DNA of 64,000 nucleotides from Calcarisporiella thermophila CBS 279.70. Its lineage: Eukaryota > Fungi > Calcarisporiellomycota. Under the pieces are notes generated by a model. That model searched no databases. It was given only the letters and a program-made list of their open reading frames with translations, and was not told the DNA's origin. The stretch's first letter is position 1; the number at the start of each line of letters is the position of its first letter. Positions 4,901-39,385 of the stretch are shown one piece after another. Both the position numbers and the translations under genes were made by a program. The DNA is taken from assembly GCF_041956535.1 (NCBI RefSeq), contig NW_027192191.1, positions 879,443 to 943,442 of the forward strand. Direction: 5' to 3'.

Positions 4901-6583
4901 TTATTTGGCGCCCACTGCAAAACGCTCCAGGCTCTGATCTTCCAATACATTGAGTCCGGTCACCACGAATGAGGGCTGAGAAGCAAGCGCCCCAAATTTA
5001 CACAAGTCTTCCACGAGGGTCCATGAAGCAAGCACACAATCCTTTATGCCAATGCCGTTATAACTGCTGCCCGTAACGGAGAGGCGGTGTCCGGTGGTAC
5101 TTTGCATGGCACGATGAAGCTCTTGCATCCGTCCAATATGGCCTACCTGATATTGCGGGATGCATCCCTGCTGCATTCCAACCGCAGATAGCACAGGAGG
5201 AGCCTGGATTCCAAGAGTCTGCTTAACAGTATCTGTTGCAAGCTCCAGCAGCTGCTGTTTAGTTATTGTGGAGGGATCCTGTCCTGGGAATGCATGTGGT
5301 AAACGAGCGCCGCCAATCATAACTGTGAGTTTGGTAATGGGTCGCTCGTCTTGTTCGGGGAGGGCGCGAGAGTCGAATATAATTCCAAGCACTCCTTTGC
5401 TTTCTTGGATGAACAACTCTGGAACTAGGAATCCAAATCCGTCTGGGACCTCACCGGATGAATAAGCAAGATTGACTACCCCAACATTGACTGACGGGTT
5501 ATGAGTTAAATGCGGAAGGGGAGTGGTTCCAGTTAACAGTTGGTGAAGCGCCGGGGAAGGGAGGGCGCTGATAACATGGTCGGCCTCTAGTTCGTTTGAC
5601 GAAAGCATCAGCTAATCGAATAGGCGAAGCTTATTAGAGACTAGGGAATCAAAAGCTAAAAATCTTGAATACATACTCGGACCCGGTCGTTCTCGAACAT
5701 TAGCTGCAATACATGCTGATTTGTTTCCATCTTCACGTTTGGCATCTGTGAGAGTGCCTTCACCAGTGCTTGCGGGAGCGATTCAACTCCATTCTTAAAG
5801 CTAAACATGCTCACTTTATCCATGTGCTCATAGAGGTCAAAGTTCTCTCTCCTGGCTCTCCACTTAATCCCCTTCTCTCGATAGGTCTCCAACCCTCCGC
5901 GGATCATTCCTAGAAGAACGGACCCGTACACTTTTTCCGCATCCCATAGATAGGGCATAGTTGCTCTCACACTTAGTTCACGCGCATCGCCGGCATAAAT
6001 TCCATGCATGACCGCCGATATTAGGTTAGATGCAATGTTGTCGTTAAACCGGCGAGAAACAAAGTCGTAGACACTTTCATCCTCCACATCATCAGATATC
6101 CGGCTCACGAATGGCTCTCGGAGGGCGCCAGTTATAAGACCCTTTAGGGCGGGAGAGCGATCGAAGAGAAGCGAGAGAGGAGAGGTGGGTAATTGATTGA
6201 GTCTACCTGAGTGGTATATAAAGCGATTTTTTGCTGCCGGTTGAGTTTTTGGAACTGTAATCAGCTCAGGTAACAGATTGAGTCGGCTAATCTATCAACT
6301 CAAGAGCAATTGAGTAAAAAAAGATTTAAGATCATTATTAAGTAATATTTACAGTATCAATAAGAACATAACCACCCGCTCCGTTACATCTGAGGGTGTG
6401 AGGCCCCCGTTCAAACAAGACCCCCTGGTCACCCTCTCGACTTGACCGAATCCAACCACCCCATCTCTCTGAACTCTCCAATAATGTAATTTTGATTTTT
6501 GGTAGAGCATTGGCCAGAAAATAAGCCGCGCTAAGACCTGAGATGCCACCCCCCAATATTACGACGCGGCTTGGAGCACTCAT
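4901..6583 (-). CDS. HEM14: Protoporphyrinogen oxidase (multi-exon)
   Basis: N-terminal VVILGGGISGL FAD fold, FERGPHTLR, GIYAGDARELS, GFGFLVP and IPQYQVGH motifs spread over three ORF pieces separated by short introns. Confidence 0.9.
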
Positions 6584-31938: not shown

Positions 31939-34900
31939 ATGGCATCACTCTCTTCAAAAGGTCAGGAAATACCAAGCGGGGACATGAACTTCAAATCGAG
32001 TGTTAGGATGCCTGAGTTCACTGGTATAGTTGACATACACAACTACTCTTTACTTCTTTCAACTTTAAAATTTCTAAACTTATAGCATCCAATCTCATTG
32101 GTGATAATTTGAAAAAATATGTCCCTAATCGCTATTACAATGAGCATTTCTTTGGTGTACCAAAAGTGAATGGAGCTTTCATTGACCGCCCAAGTATCTG
32201 GAATAAAATGACAAACACTCCAGCTAAAGAAACCAGCTCCGTAAAGAGAGTGATTTTAGCGCTAAATGGGCGTGGTGGTGCAGGCAAAACTCAACTTATG
32301 CTTCGATACTGCTACTATCATCGTGATCAATATGACTTCATATTCTGGCTTAGAGCCGACAACTGGATGCTGACAGCAAATTCAATTCGGAGTTTAGCTA
32401 TCAACCTCGGTTTTGATGAGAGGGCTTTTGAGGAAGAATATGCGGATGAAAAGATGATCAAATGGGTTCGTGGCTGGCTTGAGAGAACACCGAGATGGCT
32501 ACTACTCCTTGATAATGCTGATAGCCAGGTACTTGGAAGACTTCCAGACGTTCTACCGCGTCAGGGAGGGACTATTATTTTGTCTACACGTGAGACGGTT
32601 TCAATGGAAGAGGCTGTAGTGATTCACGTCGATAAAATGGAAGAAGAAGAAGCACTCTCACTCCTCCACCAGGGTTCTACAATGGAGTCTATCAACGTAG
32701 AAACTACAAAATTTCATATAGCTAAAGAGCTCGTCGCAGAACTCGAGTATATGCCACTCGCAATTGAGCTCGCACGGGCGTTTATTAAAAACACAAGTCA
32801 GCACTTCCAAGAATACCTAGCACTTTTCAAGAGGTGTCGAGATAGAATGTTTCCAACCATCCACCAAGACTCCCCTGATCCGCATGACCGAAACATAGCA
32901 ACTATTTGTAATATTTTATTCGAGCACTTGCGAAGAGTAGATCCTATCGCAATGAATATTCTCGAAATATGTGCTTTCCTACAACCCAATAACATTCCCG
33001 TGCAATTTTTTGGACGACAATTTTCTAGACTCAAGTTGGATTCTACCCTCCTCGCTTCTTTTAAGAGAGGTTTGAACGTCGATTTTCCTTGTACTGTTAG
33101 CACCTCCTTAGATACAATCAGCACATTTTCATTGGCTAGTTTCGATAATAATGATAAGAGGTGCAAAGCAACTGTATTTACCATACATCCTCTGGTTCAA
33201 AAAACAATATACGAGGATATGAGCGAGGAAAGAAGAATGCATTTGGTTCTTAATCTCGCCGATGCTCTCGACATTGAAACTGAGTTTAACTGCGTATACA
33301 ATCCACATTCACGAGAAATTATGGACGTCTATGCACAGCATATTCTTCATTTTGCTTCAGTGTTCAATAATTCCTACCAAAATGAACCCGTGTCTGAGAG
33401 ATTCTGTAGTCTATTAAACCGAACGATTTATTTTCTATTGCATTCCGGTTTTCTTGTTGGCTTGGAGCGATTGTCAGAGTTTTCAGTCTTGGCTTCACAG
33501 TCAATATACGAAAGTGAGCACACGGAAATAGCGACCTCATTGAATAATCTTGCTACGCTCTTTCGTTATCAGAGTGATTATGCCAGGGCCGAGCAGCTTT
33601 ATGAAAAAGCATTGGCTATTCGAGAGAATATATTGGGACTAGAGCACTCGAAATCAGCAACCTCTTTAAACAACCTAGCCTGTCTTTATCATTACCAATT
33701 TGACTTCGATAGAGCTCTGCTATTGTTTCAAAGAGCTTTGACTATCTACGAGAGATCACTAGGATACGAACATCCATTTACAATAACCATACTGAACAAT
33801 CTCGCCGAATGCCACAACGACCAAGGAAACTACGATAGAGCGGAGCCATTGTACCAAAAGTTACTGGCCATTGACGAAAAGCTGTCGGGATCGGAACACT
33901 TGGCCACTGCTGTATCTCTGAGTAATTTGGCTGACATATACCAGAGCCAGTATAAATGCTCGAGTGCTGAGCCGCTTTACACTAAAGCTCTGAGTATTAA
34001 AGAGAAATTGCTAGGACGTGATCATCTCAATGTGATTGACTCTCTGAACGATCTCTCTTCACTCTACCATGTCCAAGGAAATTTTAACAAAGCCTCGAGT
34101 ATATCCACTCAGAGCCTTAGGATTTCGAGCAATCTATCAGATATTGAGAACACATGTATGGATTTTCTCTACACTTTATATGAACAGGCTGGGTTCTATC
34201 ATGATTTGAAGGAGTACAACAAAAACGAGCACATTTATCAGCGTTCACTTGCAACTGAAGAGATTGTATTGGAATTTGAGCATCCACTCCCCACAAAATC
34301 CTTAAAACACCTTGCCCATCTATTCTATCAGGCGAGAAATATGGACGATAAAGCCGAACCGATATATATGAGGGTTTTGGAAGCCCAAGAAAAGATTTTA
34401 GGGACAGAGCATCCATACGTAGCAATATCACTTGACAGTCTGGCGGAGTTCCATCGATATAAGGAGAACTACGATAAAGCAGAACCTTTTTACGAGCGAG
34501 CACTGGAAATTCGCGAAAAGGCGTGGGGCTCTGATCACATATTCTTAGCAAATTCCCTTGACAATCTTGCCTGGGTTTGTCTTGGACAAGATAATAATAG
34601 CAAGGCCGATCCACTTTATCAGCGAGCACTAGAAATTATTGATAGAAACTTTGGACCTGAACACCCTGACACGATAAGATATCTAGAAGATATGATCACG
34701 TGTTATTTATCCTATGGCAAAAGGGAGCAGGCCGAATTATTGCATTGTCGTCTACTTTCGACCCAAGAGAAGCAATTGGAATCCAGTTGTCCAAATGAAT
34801 TGAATTTTGACATTATATACACAATCCCGGGGACTTTTGAGAGAGCCAAATTACTATATCAGCGACTACTTATTGCGCAAGAAACTCTCTTGGGTTCTGA

Positions 34901-35840
34901 ACACAAAGACGTAGCAAAGCGTGTAGAAGAGCTAGCTTATTACTACAAATACAATAGAAAATACGAGGAATATGAATCACAACTCCAGCGAGCGATGGCA
35001 ATTCGGGAAAAATCGCATGGATTGGTACATCCCGATACAAGGAGATCTCTAGGAATGTTGGTTAGGCACTATTGTGACCAAAGTGATTATGAAAAGGCTG
35101 AATCAATTCTACACAGAGCTTACGGGATTCTGGAAAGTGAATTGGGACCTGATCATCCGGATACGAGAGATATGTTGCAAGATTTTGCTAAACTTTATTA
35201 CAACAAAGGTGACCTCTATAGAGCTGAAATTTTCTACAAACGTATGTTGGAGATTTCCGAGAAAGAGTTTGGGCACGATCATCCAGATAACGTGGATTAT
35301 ATCAACAAACTTGCCAGTTTCTATTGCGACAAAAAAGATTACGGTAATGCGGAACTACTCTACCAACGCTCTTTAGATATCAACGCGAAAACACTTGGTC
35401 CAGATCCGGAAACAGTAGTTTCTATGAATCGGCTGGCAGAATTTTACCTCGAACAGAAAGAGCTTGAAAAATCGGAAACGCACTATAAGAACTCCTTGGA
35501 GATCACTGCAATAATCGAAGGACCAGATACTTTATATTCAGCGAGAATCCAACTGAAGCTTGCCTCGATATATCGTCAATGGGGTCAGTATGAGAAAGCC
35601 GCGTCACTCTATCAACAATCGCTGTCCGTCTTCGAACATATATTTGGATCGAATGATGAGGATACAATAACCATTTTATGTGACCTGGGAACACTATATC
35701 AGAAATGGGGGTACCATACGATGGCCCAGTCATTTTTTAAGCGAGTGTTGGAGTTCCGTGAAAAAACGCTTGGGACCGACCATTCTGACACGAACCATAT
35801 ACGAGCACTTTTAGAAAATATTGAAATACATAATGACTAG
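31939..35840 (+). CDS. Fungal NLR-like STAND protein: NB-ARC + TPR (42-aa kinesin-light-chain-type repeats); exons 31939-32023 and 32086-35840
   Basis: Walker A GRGGAGKTQL, Walker B WLLLLDNAD, IILSTR, YMPLAI and IHPLVQ, followed by many xHPxxAxSLNNLA...Y.RAL repeats. A phase-1 GT-AG intron at 32024-32085 links an upstream ATG exon in frame. Confidence 0.9.
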
Positions 35841-37040
35841 TTTCCATAGATCCTGTCGATAATGTATCTTAACCTTTCTCTTTTTATTTGTAATATCACC
35901 TTTATTTATAATTTATACAAACTATAATTGATGTACTTCTATCGAGTTGTGGAAACCAACTTTTTCGCATTTGCACGGATTTTTCTGGATGTTGGTGATG
36001 CAGGAGTATTCAATATTTACAATTGAATCCAGCCGATTTAAATTTAATTGAGCCAAGTGGCTCAATGTAAATTGGTAGATAGATAGGTATAGTTACAGTA
36101 TACTAGGCTCAATATGAAATTTCTGTGACTTTTTTTCAGTGTCGCTCAATGTTAAACGTGCATCTAAACATATTTAGCTTTGTTTTGAGGCAATTCAGCA
36201 TGTTTATTTTTCTTGCATCAGTTGTGGTATCTATTCGATATCTGAGGCATGCGGATGAATTTCTTCGAGCTATAGATCACTTTGAGCTATGAGCTTCTCA
36301 GTCATTTCCTACCCCTCTTCGATCTATTAACTTGAACATTAAACACAAGTTTTAATAAAAGTTAGTATATACTATATTTTAATGTCGTTATTACAATAGA
36401 TGCGATTCTAACGCATTTAATTAAGACTGTTGCTGCAATGCAGATGCTAATGAAGTCCCATGCTCAATTATTTTCGGCCGTTGGATATAAGGTCACATTT
36501 GGGGAATCTTCGTTGTATTGATGATTAAAAAGTATATTAGAATTGGTTGATGAAAGCTTTTACAGAACCTTCATGTTGAGGATTTTGGCGAAATAGGAGT
36601 TATGGATAGGTCGGATAAGGGGTAAAGGCAAGCAAAGCAAGTAGCTAGAACGGATAGAGTGCCATGTTTAAGTGGTGAACATTTATATTAAAGAATGATG
36701 CATGTTACTATGAGATTTGCATCCTCTCCTCATTATGTAGAAGTTACTCCCGTCGATATCTGATATATCCTCATGCTTGTAATTGCCCTCATGCAAAATT
36801 ATTAAATATTTGTAACAGCACAAATGATCAAACAAAATTTTCTTGAATATGAAAGAATATGACCATACATATAACAAATAAAGCCAAATGACCATACAAT
36901 GAATCGCAAGCAAATACTGGGCATTATAATTAACCTAATATGAAAACCAAAGCAATCTTTGATTATGATAATTATACTATTAGTTTATTGAAATAGCATT
37001 TCCCAAAATTTGTAATGAATGGTTCAAAAAACAGCAAAAA

Positions 37041-37270
37041 TTATTCATTTACACACAGATTGCCATGGGGCGTATTAAACAATCCCACAACGCTAACAGT
37101 ATTACCACAAATATTGGCATCTACTCTGACTGGGACCTGGACAACATCTCCACTCACGACTCCGAGGGTTTCCCATCCGCTGGATGACCTCTTATCTCTA
37201 ACGGTGCTCCTTTCGATTGCGTAGCAAAAAATAAAAGAAAGAAACCAGCATATACTGGAGTATATTTCAT
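37041..37270 (-). pseudogene. Chaplin (DUF320/ChpA-H)-like small secreted amyloid protein; one frameshift between the signal/propeptide and the chaplin domain
   Basis: ATG frame: MKYTPVYAGFFLLFFATQSKG-APLEIRGHPADGKPS. The -1 frame continues GVVSGDVVQVPVRVDANICGNTVSVVGLFNTPHGNLCVNE*, matching the chaplin consensus PGVLSGNVVQVPVHVPVNVCGNTVSVVGLLNPAFGNxCxN. Confidence 0.85.
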
Positions 37271-38119
37271 ATAGTAAAAGGGCATATAAACGTTGGGGGG
37301 GGGAGGATTGAATAACTTGTACCTTACGAAAATCTGGGATGGTAAAACAATAAGTGCAACTTGTGTATAAATCACAATAGTTCGGGTATTACTGGTGAAA
37401 TATTGAAATTTGAAAAGAGCTGATTAAAAAAAAGGAGGTTGAGAAAAGCGTGGGCACATTTATATAATGTATGCATACTAGCCGTTAAGTGGATCAGCGT
37501 GTTTTCGCCGTAAAAGAATCTATTGCCTCGGCGAAGGAGGCTTACAGAACGCACAAAATGAAGAATTAAAAATATTCCATTTAAAGAATTATAGAAAAAT
37601 TGAATATTGTGGTGGAACAGATGGCTAGTAGAGCAAGTAGCTTGAGTGGTGAAAGTGTCATTATTACGAAACTTTCATCCCATATCATCATGCAGGAATC
37701 GTCCCCATTGATATCTGATTTACCTTCCTACCTGCAAAAGACTCTGTACGAAGCTATATTAATAAATTGGTAGATATATTTTATTCTATCATACACTATA
37801 AAGTACTCGACCAGTTGATTAAATAATTCAAAAAAGAAATTTAGAGTATGAATTAATATATCTTAAAAAAAGTTTGCTTTTCAAGCATAAACATGGTGAG
37901 AATATATTAAATAAAATATAACAAACTAAACTTCTTTTGAGATCAAGCAATGATTATTATTATACAAAAAATTTAGACGGAGTCAACTAACATGAAGTAG
38001 GGAAGGATCCTCTAGAAATTTCGACTCTAGTATAAAAGAACCGGAGAGCCATTCTGTGGTTTCAATTATACATCATTCCTCTAAAATGGCACCACACTAT
38101 TTTACCGTATTTACCTTCA

Positions 38120-39385
38120 TTATTCGCCGGCCAATTCTTCCTCAAATCCATAAACCCCATAATCAAATACTTCAAACCACGTTAAACGTTCGCTTAGCTT
38201 ACCACGATGTACGGCGGCAATGCACCGGCGCTCATCGAATGCCAGTTGCCACACACCTTGTACGTTGGTCAACAAATCGCACACGTGTTGCCCCGTAGAA
38301 ATATCCCACATCTTGATCCCACCCTCTGCTCCAGATATTATCTTGGTGTCATCGTGCTGGAAACACGTGACAGCACTTCGATGCTCTTCGAGCACATGGC
38401 GACATTCATGGCTTTCCATGTCCCAAACCCGTAAGGTGCCATCTGCCGAAGCCGACACAATATAGTTACGGGACACCTCAAGTAAACCCACAAGGGATGT
38501 ATGGCCTTCAAGCGTTGCGAGGCAGGATCCGTCAAGTAGGCTCCAAATCCGTAATACACCTTCAAAAGAACCGCTTATACAAGCTCTGCGATCTGGTGTC
38601 ATTGCTACCGTGTATACTTTCTGGGTATGCCCTTCCAACACGAATTGACACGTGCCTGTTGCTAGGTCCCAAACCCGCAGCGTATGGTCATAGCTACCAC
38701 TGACAATCGTGTTTCCCATTACAGCAATGGTTCGCACAGAGTCTGAATGCCCAGTTAGTACGTGAAGCAAATGCGGGTCAGAGTCGTTAGGAAATTGAGA
38801 AGAATCATGCTCTTCAGTACACAGCCCATTGTCAATATCGGGAAGTTTCCATACACGAAGAGTTGTATCGCGCGAACCTGTCACAATTAATGGCATCGAG
38901 GGCTCCATGACACGAGTGCCATCGGGCTGCACAATTGCCGTGGGTAGACTTAATACCAAACAGCGAACCGTGCTGGTGTGGCCCCTGAAAACGTGTGTAC
39001 ATTTAGCCTGTTCAATATTCCAGACTCGAAGAGTGCGATCCGTTGAACCTGAGACCAGTATATTTCCATCGAATTGCAATGCCCATACTCCACCCTCATG
39101 GCCTTTAAGACGATTACGCAGACTACCGGTTGCGGTGTCATACACGTTGATGCAATTATCATCTGATCCAGAAATGATTTTGTCATTATCAAACTGCAGG
39201 CAAGTAACTAGGTTATTACTGTGTCCTTGAAACGAGTAGCGCTTAGCTCGACCCAAGGCCCAGTTGCGACGCAAAATGAATTCGCTATCAATGCAATTGA
39301 GCCCGTCATCAGATTTTTCACCCAATGCTTTGTGAGAACTTTGATCTTCCTTGTGCACTTTATTGATGGAAGATTTTTCACCCAT
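38120..39385 (-). CDS. Cdc4/Fbw7-like WD40 beta-propeller protein lacking an F-box; intronless
   Basis: RRNW...GH..VTCLQFDNDKIISGSDD, GHEGGVWALQ, GHTSTVRCL and LIVTGSRDTTLRVWKLP are Cdc4-type repeats. Only about 35 aa precede the RRNW helix. Confidence 0.8.
   Translation of the reverse strand: MGEKSSINKVHKEDQSSHKALGEKSDDGLNCIDSEFILRRNWALGRAKRYSFQGHSNNLVTCLQFDNDKIISGSDDNCINVYDTATGSLRNRLKGHEGGVWALQFDGNILVSGSTDRTLRVWNIEQAKCTHVFRGHTSTVRCLVLSLPTAIVQPDGTRVMEPSMPLIVTGSRDTTLRVWKLPDIDNGLCTEEHDSSQFPNDSDPHLLHVLTGHSDSVRTIAVMGNTIVSGSYDHTLRVWDLATGTCQFVLEGHTQKVYTVAMTPDRRACISGSFEGVLRIWSLLDGSCLATLEGHTSLVGLLEVSRNYIVSASADGTLRVWDMESHECRHVLEEHRSAVTCFQHDDTKIISGAEGGIKMWDISTGQHVCDLLTNVQGVWQLAFDERRCIAAVHRGKLSERLTWFEVFDYGVYGFEEELAGE

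Follow-up and report, generated by a model that had tools for sequence, protein, structure and literature searches.

What is a surface protein of the Streptomyces type doing in the genome of an early-diverging fungus, and is the gene for it still intact? The question is raised by positions 37270-37041 (minus strand) of the window, by which we mean the whole 64,000-nt stretch of Calcarisporiella thermophila CBS 279.70 that was analysed (contig NW_027192191.1, positions 879,443 to 943,442). A sequence-only reading of this DNA had noticed a chaplin domain of actinobacterial type and, in another frame, a eukaryotic signal peptide. Chaplins are surface-active amyloids that coat the aerial hyphae and spores of Streptomyces (PMC3079736, PMC5618241); in vitro any single short chaplin suffices to form amyloid fibrils, and in vivo the conserved pair of Cys is important (PMC3079736; PMC5618241). 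Judged from its sequence, the window locus is very probably a pseudogene belonging to a family of three chaplin genes in C. thermophila, and the other two members are intact.

Reading frames and lesion at the window locus

The 40-residue chaplin core and its stop codon are read from minus 37163-37041, and the translation given by the sequence-only reading is exact. The profile check that it called for was run with hmmscan: PF03777 (ChpA-C / DUF320) matches the window copy with E=5.5e-15 and 55.4 bits, against a cut-off of 21, over profile positions 18-57 of 57. The same match appears in a six-frame scan of the genome at C1:916489-916608, which is 37047-37166 of the window. An actinobacterial-type chaplin domain, frameshifted, is therefore present in this fungal genome as claimed. 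So is the eukaryotic-type signal peptide in the other frame, whose leader has one Lys, a Phe/Leu-rich core and a T-Q-S cleavage-like site, with probable cleavage after T-Q-S by rule-based reading. The features of the locus are listed here.

37157-37270, minus strand: leader ORF fragment of 38 codons, with ATG at 37270, a signal-peptide-like hydrophobic core and a short linker at its end
37154-37156, minus strand: premature TGA that closes the leader frame (from the sequence)
37160-37172, minus strand: lesion zone, with a net 10-nt deficit against the C30 paralogue (from DNA alignment)
37041-37166, minus strand: chaplin domain frame, 41 codons and TAA, without a start codon of its own (PF03777 match)
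36984-36989, minus strand: AATAAA, a hexamer like a polyadenylation signal, 52-57 nt past the stop codon (from the sequence)

Leader and domain lie in different frames. In the second, which lacks a start codon, no stop occurs between 37277 and the TAA at 37043-37041; the continuous frame of a functional chaplin gene is broken by the stop at 37156-37154. Both Cys and all 12 columns that are invariant in an 18-sequence chaplin alignment are present in the window copy, as they are in the two other fungal copies.

It had been suggested that one added base would repair the gene. A single added base does fuse the two frames into an ORF of 76 codons, but the lesion is larger than that. The DNA of the window copy aligns with that of C30 through the leader and then again from G-V-V at the start of the domain core, and the distance between fixed anchors is 56 nt in the window copy and 66 nt in C30. 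This deficit of 10 nt corresponds to about three lost codons of the N-terminal part of the domain plus a frameshift; the Pfam match begins at profile position 18 in the window copy and at 11 and 6 in the intact copies. The best parses of the lesion require either a 10-nt gap with several mismatches or an 11-nt gap with a 1-nt insertion, so more than one mutational event is likely. The lesion sequence contains no homopolymer run, which makes a typical sequencing error unlikely.

A propeptide (APLEIR) had also been proposed. The segment has no dibasic site and an intact paralogue has APLEIS in its place, so no processed propeptide is suggested. A Kex2 propeptide was rejected as well: the K-R upstream of the domain in the chaplin frame is out of frame relative to the intact paralogues and is coincidental.

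Of all 2-kb blocks of the window, the one that holds the relic has the lowest GC (33.7%); the relic is flanked by an NLR-type gene with NB-ARC and TPR (32109-35840) and a seven-bladed WD40 gene (38120-39385).

Two intact paralogues

The six-frame PF03777 scan covered the whole assembly (28.2 Mb in 116 contigs) and found three places, namely the window copy and two others, which answers the call for a search for intact paralogues.

C30:220558-220698, minus strand: C30 copy, PF03777 at 73.9 bits; ORF L002:1495-1734, 79 aa, single exon
C10:350299-350454, minus strand: C10 copy, PF03777 at 79.1 bits; ORF L001:1495-1737, 80 aa, single exon

Their leaders are of the same kind as that of the window copy, with a hydrophobic core and A-Q-S at -3 to -1, which fits the -3/-1 rule for signal-peptide cleavage. 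The predicted mature peptides of C30 and C10 have 60 and 62 residues, two Cys each, and are mildly hydrophobic. By this rule-based reading both proteins have the architecture of short chaplins, in which a secretion signal precedes a mature peptide of about 50-60 residues, and the genes most likely encode secreted two-Cys peptides of about 60 residues. An AF2 model of the mature C30 peptide had a pLDDT of 49 and was without secondary structure. NCBIfam gave no match for any of the three copies.

Exact look-up in a public collection of 15 billion sequences did not find the C30 and C10 proteins. By contrast, two hydrophobin-like genes of the same genome (113-117 aa; VTP21DRAFT_3664 and 3665) are present there. 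The two intact chaplin genes thus appear to be unannotated. Zinc-binding dehydrogenase genes (ADH_zinc_N_2) lie within 4-6 kb of both intact loci (L012:5997-6809; L011:3306-4055 and 4927-5763).

Probable decay of the window copy

The duplication that links the window locus to the C30 locus extends well beyond the coding region.

36207-37771: duplicated segment of about 1.6 kb, with 76% identity between the window locus and C30 (blastn, L003 661-2225 against L002 629-2241)

Within it, leader and domain have diverged differently, as measured by dN/dS (Nei-Gojobori).

Leader, window copy against C30: dN/dS 0.26, dS 0.20
Domain, window copy against C30: dN/dS 1.05, dS 0.21
Domain, C30 against C10: dN/dS 0.31, dS 0.84

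The window-C30 domain value is drawn from 40 codons, with 5.5 synonymous and 17.5 non-synonymous differences; the leaders of the two copies are identical at 23/26 residues. Between C10 and the chaplin of Linnemannia elongata, dN is 0.07 and dS about 2. Going by these substitution patterns, the intact chaplin genes are under constraint.

Residue states were also compared with 262 bacterial chaplin cores. States at a frequency of 1.1% or less number seven in the window copy, one in C30 and three in C10, and the three of C10 are signatures of its subfamily. Those of the window copy include a change of N to D in the near-invariant S-G-N motif, and its L-L-N-P-A motif carries three changes (F/T/P substitutions). 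Some of its other departures, V-D-A-N, N-T-V-S and G-N-L-C-V-N-E, are rare natural Streptomyces variants, found in S. luteireticuli ChpH and in chaplins of S. caatingaensis and Streptoverticillium reticulum, so part of the divergence may be ancestral or once functional rather than decay. In the V-D-A-N stretch (D-A-N-I codons at 37113-37124), a variant found in only 3 of several hundred bacterial domains, the window differs from C30 at 7/12 nt, against roughly 15-20% elsewhere; V-D-A-N may go back to an ancestor, stem from a short conversion patch or be a convergence.

Could the frameshift belong to the assembly or sequencing rather than to the genome, in which case the window would hold a third intact chaplin gene? 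The ease with which one added base joins the frames would fit such an error, as would the retention of all invariant chaplin residues and both Cys. Yet, in sequence that is not a homopolymer, the window copy is a net 10 nt shorter than C30, probably through two events; the joined ORF would still be about three codons short on the N-terminal side of the domain; and the domain shows a dN/dS near 1 together with seven rare states, the SGN and LLNPA changes among them. We regard an error as unlikely. Rescue at the level of RNA, by splicing of a 29-nt GT..AG segment (about 37189-37161) or by a programmed ribosomal frameshift, is much less probable still. Excision of this segment (GTCATC...GGAG) does join the leader and chaplin frames, but its donor is non-canonical, both intact paralogues are intronless across the homologous stretch, and a slippery site is not evident. 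Twenty-nine nucleotides are, moreover, well under the usual lengths of fungal introns. Both candidate introns, the 21-nt GTGAGT..CAG and the 29-nt GTCATC..GGAG, were rejected as too short and as having no counterpart in the paralogues.

The frameshift, the domain dN/dS of about 1 and the seven rare states together favour a pseudogene of moderate age. The sequence-only reading had left the choice between a young pseudogene and an assembly indel; of this, the pseudogene is favoured, but with a dS of about 0.2 to its sister copy C30 it is not especially young. We consider the window copy to be non-functional, and at most it would yield a leader peptide of 38 residues.

A shared 5' region

Upstream of the coding regions the three loci have a non-coding element and a core promoter sequence in common.

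37378-37760, minus strand: non-coding upstream element, about 400 bp, 76-83% identity between loci
37459-37466, minus strand: TATA-box-like TATATAAA, about 190 nt 5' of the ATG, conserved in all three loci (from the sequence)

The conserved TATA box falls in the shared upstream region. The other copies of the element lie at L002:1845-2230 and L001:2117-2523; genome-wide there are only these three, each beside a chaplin gene. The element (76-83%) is more conserved than the C30-C10 CDS (68.5%), and the C30 and C10 leaders are about 78% identical in nucleotides. No Rfam family and no frame-consistent conserved ORF was found in it, and the covariation term was positive, which gives no support for an RNA structure. 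Metagenome scans with the fungal leader and with a 27-nt core of the element found nothing. C10 has about 375 bp extra between element and gene, with a second TATA-like core promoter.

Origin of the domains

In a word search the C30 protein matched bacterial chaplins only, with up to 80-84% domain identity. The best 80 loci among genomes of bacterial and archaeal species were all from Streptomycetaceae (by title, 78 Streptomyces, 1 Streptoverticillium and 1 [Kitasatospora] papulosa). Identity over the core to Streptomyces ChpH-like proteins is 35/40 for C30 and 30/40 for the window copy. An exhaustive phmmer search gave 1072 representatives, the best 150 being mostly multi-domain proteins; ten of these 150 were looked up, and the four that were named are all bacterial chaplins or LPXTG cell-wall proteins. 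The ESM Atlas returned actinobacterial chaplin clusters only (score 0.78).

Among the bacterial chaplins closest to the C30 type are P0001 and P0032, from a soil metagenome contig (L014) and a Logan contig (L015). Both carry the C30-type ending G-N-V-C-V-N-E, and their contigs have 59% and 54% GC, against 69-70% for Streptomyces loci; the donor lineage may for this reason not be Streptomyces sensu stricto.

C10 has other relatives. Its word-search matches are a 'putative chaplin' of L. elongata, an incomplete L. schmuckeri protein, a Logan-contig protein of 79 aa and a chaplin of Lentzea sp. NBRC 105346, all four 85-87% identical to it, and Linnemannia was the only fungal genus matched in the protein searches. 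The C10 type is recognised by G-D-A-W ahead of S-P-G, by N-I-K, by C-G-L/I-T and by a C-M-N-D ending. C10 and C30 are identical at only 25/40 positions.

A maximum-likelihood tree of 90 sequences (alignment of 47 columns) joins C10 with the Linnemannia, Logan and Lentzea sequences in one clade (support 100/94) and places C30 and the window copy inside a 16-member ChpH-like clade (support 97/94). A single clade for the three Calcarisporiella domains is rejected by the AU test on these 47 columns (p=0.009, delta lnL 48.7); the window copy and C30 as sisters are not rejected (p=0.46). In a first tree, built without the C10-type relatives, the fungal copies were unresolved and their monophyly was not rejected (p=0.08). 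The evidence from these alignments for two separate domain origins, one for C10 and one for C30 and the window copy, is good but not final. The sequence-only reading had overlooked both the two domain types and the relatives in Mortierellaceae.

The genomic setting is fungal. The intact genes are embedded in contigs of 306 kb and 891 kb, the neighbours of the chaplin loci are eukaryotic (NLR, WD40, TALE homeobox, GTF3C1), and AT-rich flanks are common to the three paralogous loci. A P-type ATPase ORF of the window is 100% identical to VTP21DRAFT_377 of C. thermophila, and its next-best matches are in other early-diverging fungi. The L. elongata chaplin gene (GCA_033807475.1, JAWHKT010000013.1) likewise sits in a fungal context, on a 948-kb contig among F-box genes. 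Its deposited model (83 aa; L096:4001-4350) has a spurious 3' intron; the uninterrupted ORF, L096:4001-4240, encodes 79 aa and ends in a canonical chaplin C-terminus.

Domains 75-88% identical to Streptomyces proteins might be taken for bacterial contamination of the assembly. Codon usage says otherwise: the fungal chaplin CDSs have 42-44% GC and a GC3 of 0.26-0.36, against a GC3 of 0.90-1.0 in the Streptomyces genes, and at 75-80% amino-acid identity the third codon positions are only 16-24% identical, the level of chance. With the eukaryotic leaders, the placement inside long fungal contigs beside NLR, WD40 and homeobox genes, and the AT-rich flanks that recur at three paralogous loci, contamination is next to impossible, and we rejected it on codon usage, fungal flanks and eukaryotic neighbours. 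That the protein is conserved while synonymous sites have fully turned over indicates long residence under purifying selection. Another reading accepts a transfer but only one, with all three copies diverged from a single acquired gene and the two origins an artefact of a short alignment. It would account for the leader (about 78% nucleotide identity) and the 400-bp element that the copies have in common, and the p of 0.08 obtained when C10-type relatives were left out suits it. It is rejected once the Linnemannia and Lentzea sequences are added, and C10 is far closer to these sharers of its signature (85-87%) than to C30, which in turn matches particular Streptomyces ChpH proteins at 35/40. 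We find a single origin distinctly improbable.

We infer that the Calcarisporiella chaplin domains came from actinomycetes by horizontal transfer. As expected of horizontally acquired genes, they nest in clades of the donor group, here actinobacterial, with ameliorated codons and host-type, here fungal, flanks, and their occurrence among fungi, as far as the protein searches covered it, is patchy. The horizontal acquisition proposed earlier was right in outline, given the nesting of the copies in actinobacterial clades at 97/94 and 100/94.

Hydrophobins in the same genome

The genome also encodes class I hydrophobins: three genes score above the PF01185 cut-off, each with the 8-Cys pattern. 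A genome search with PF06766 gave no match.

C25:89122-89352 (L007:1444-1746): hydrophobin, 80 bits, best of the three
L008:8-361 and L008:1486-1827, on C18: tandem hydrophobins, named only 'uncharacterized' (VTP21DRAFT_3664 and 3665)

An exact look-up did not find the C25 protein, as read here, in the public collection. Reports of hydrophobins from outside Dikarya already exist (bioRxiv 10.1101/2022.08.19.504535). They are functional analogues of chaplins, small secreted Cys proteins that form amphipathic amyloid-like layers at interfaces, but belong to an unrelated family and have an 8-Cys pattern against the two Cys of chaplins. The presence of three such genes weakens the idea that chaplins serve this lineage as its hydrophobin equivalent; they would add to the hydrophobins, not replace them.

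Comparison with other chaplins

The short chaplins of Streptomyces (ChpD-H) resemble the fungal copies in having a single PF03777 domain, two Cys and, once mature, about 55-60 residues. The closest ChpH-like proteins are those of S. luteireticuli, S. caatingaensis, S. hesseae and S. purpurogeneiscleroticus. The fungal genes differ from those of Streptomyces in their eukaryotic signal peptide (the bacterial one is Ala-rich), their AT-rich codons and their TATA and AATAAA signals. Two-domain, sortase-anchored long chaplins were not found in the six-frame PF03777 scan of the 28-Mb genome, which gave three single-domain matches only, so attachment to a chitin-glucan wall would have to differ from the bacterial system.

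The chaplins of Mortierellaceae (L. elongata; L. schmuckeri BG015_008672; Logan contig SRR5822949) are, like those of Calcarisporiella, products of single-exon genes with a eukaryotic leader in Mucoromycota. They have 79 aa, 87% domain identity to C10 and the subfamily signature in common with it; the window copy and C30, of the ChpH-like clade, are unlike them. The L. elongata leader is unrelated to the Calcarisporiella leader.

A chaplin-like small secreted protein has been described in Venturia inaequalis and V. pirina, with a proposed hydrophobin-like role (Deng et al. 2017, PMC5412055). Compared by description only, it differs in coming from Ascomycota, in a mature length of 120 aa, in four Cys, which suggest two domains, and in being up-regulated in planta (PMC5412055). 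What was known before is this passing mention in Venturia (PMC5412055) and the NCBI name 'putative chaplin' for L. elongata; our literature search returned nothing on chaplins in Mucoromycota, Mortierella, L. elongata or Calcarisporiella.

Proposed history and function

Only the 5' cassette (upstream element, core promoter, leader) is common to the two domain types, and this implies that recombination or gene conversion took place at the 5' end. After their arrival from actinomycetes, the chaplin domains would have come under a fungal promoter region and behind a eukaryotic signal peptide, their codon usage would have become fungal, and duplication would have followed. The second domain type may have entered, by recombination, a copy of a gene that was already domesticated, the fungal leader replacing the bacterial signal peptide near the cleavage site; alternatively, the 5' part may have been homogenised later through gene conversion. 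The window copy is the sister of C30, with a Streptomyces ChpH-like domain, and lost a net 10 nt at the start of that domain.

The function of C30 and C10 we infer by homology with the short chaplins of Streptomyces. Their peptides would be secreted and assemble at air-water interfaces as amphipathic amyloid layers, and such layers, together with the class I hydrophobins that the fungus has of its own, would give hyphae or spores a hydrophobic surface. The full proposal is that two distinct chaplins, of the Lentzea/Mortierellaceae and the Streptomyces ChpH types, were captured behind one cassette and work as secreted amyloids, coating aerial hyphae or spores jointly with hydrophobins. We advance it tentatively, as a real possibility that still falls somewhat short of being probable.

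Chaplins are a textbook case of convergence between bacteria and fungi, both of which leave water for air by means of an amphipathic amyloid coat on their hyphae. In an early-diverging fungus, chaplin genes have been domesticated and duplicated and are kept under purifying selection, and they occur in Mortierellaceae too, which means that the kingdoms exchanged the genes themselves. The window locus, a decaying copy, is mainly of use as a marker of turnover in the family. There is also a gap in annotation: small transferred secreted proteins can be missed, and both intact genes, of 79-80 aa, are absent from the public proteome. C. thermophila is a thermophilic member of Mucoromycota, and its chaplins could interest those who work on self-assembling peptide materials. 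If the proposal is true, bacterial genes for secreted proteins would have, in a reusable 5' cassette, a way of becoming functional in a eukaryote, and bacterial-type morphogenetic amyloids would belong to the surface biology of early-diverging fungi.
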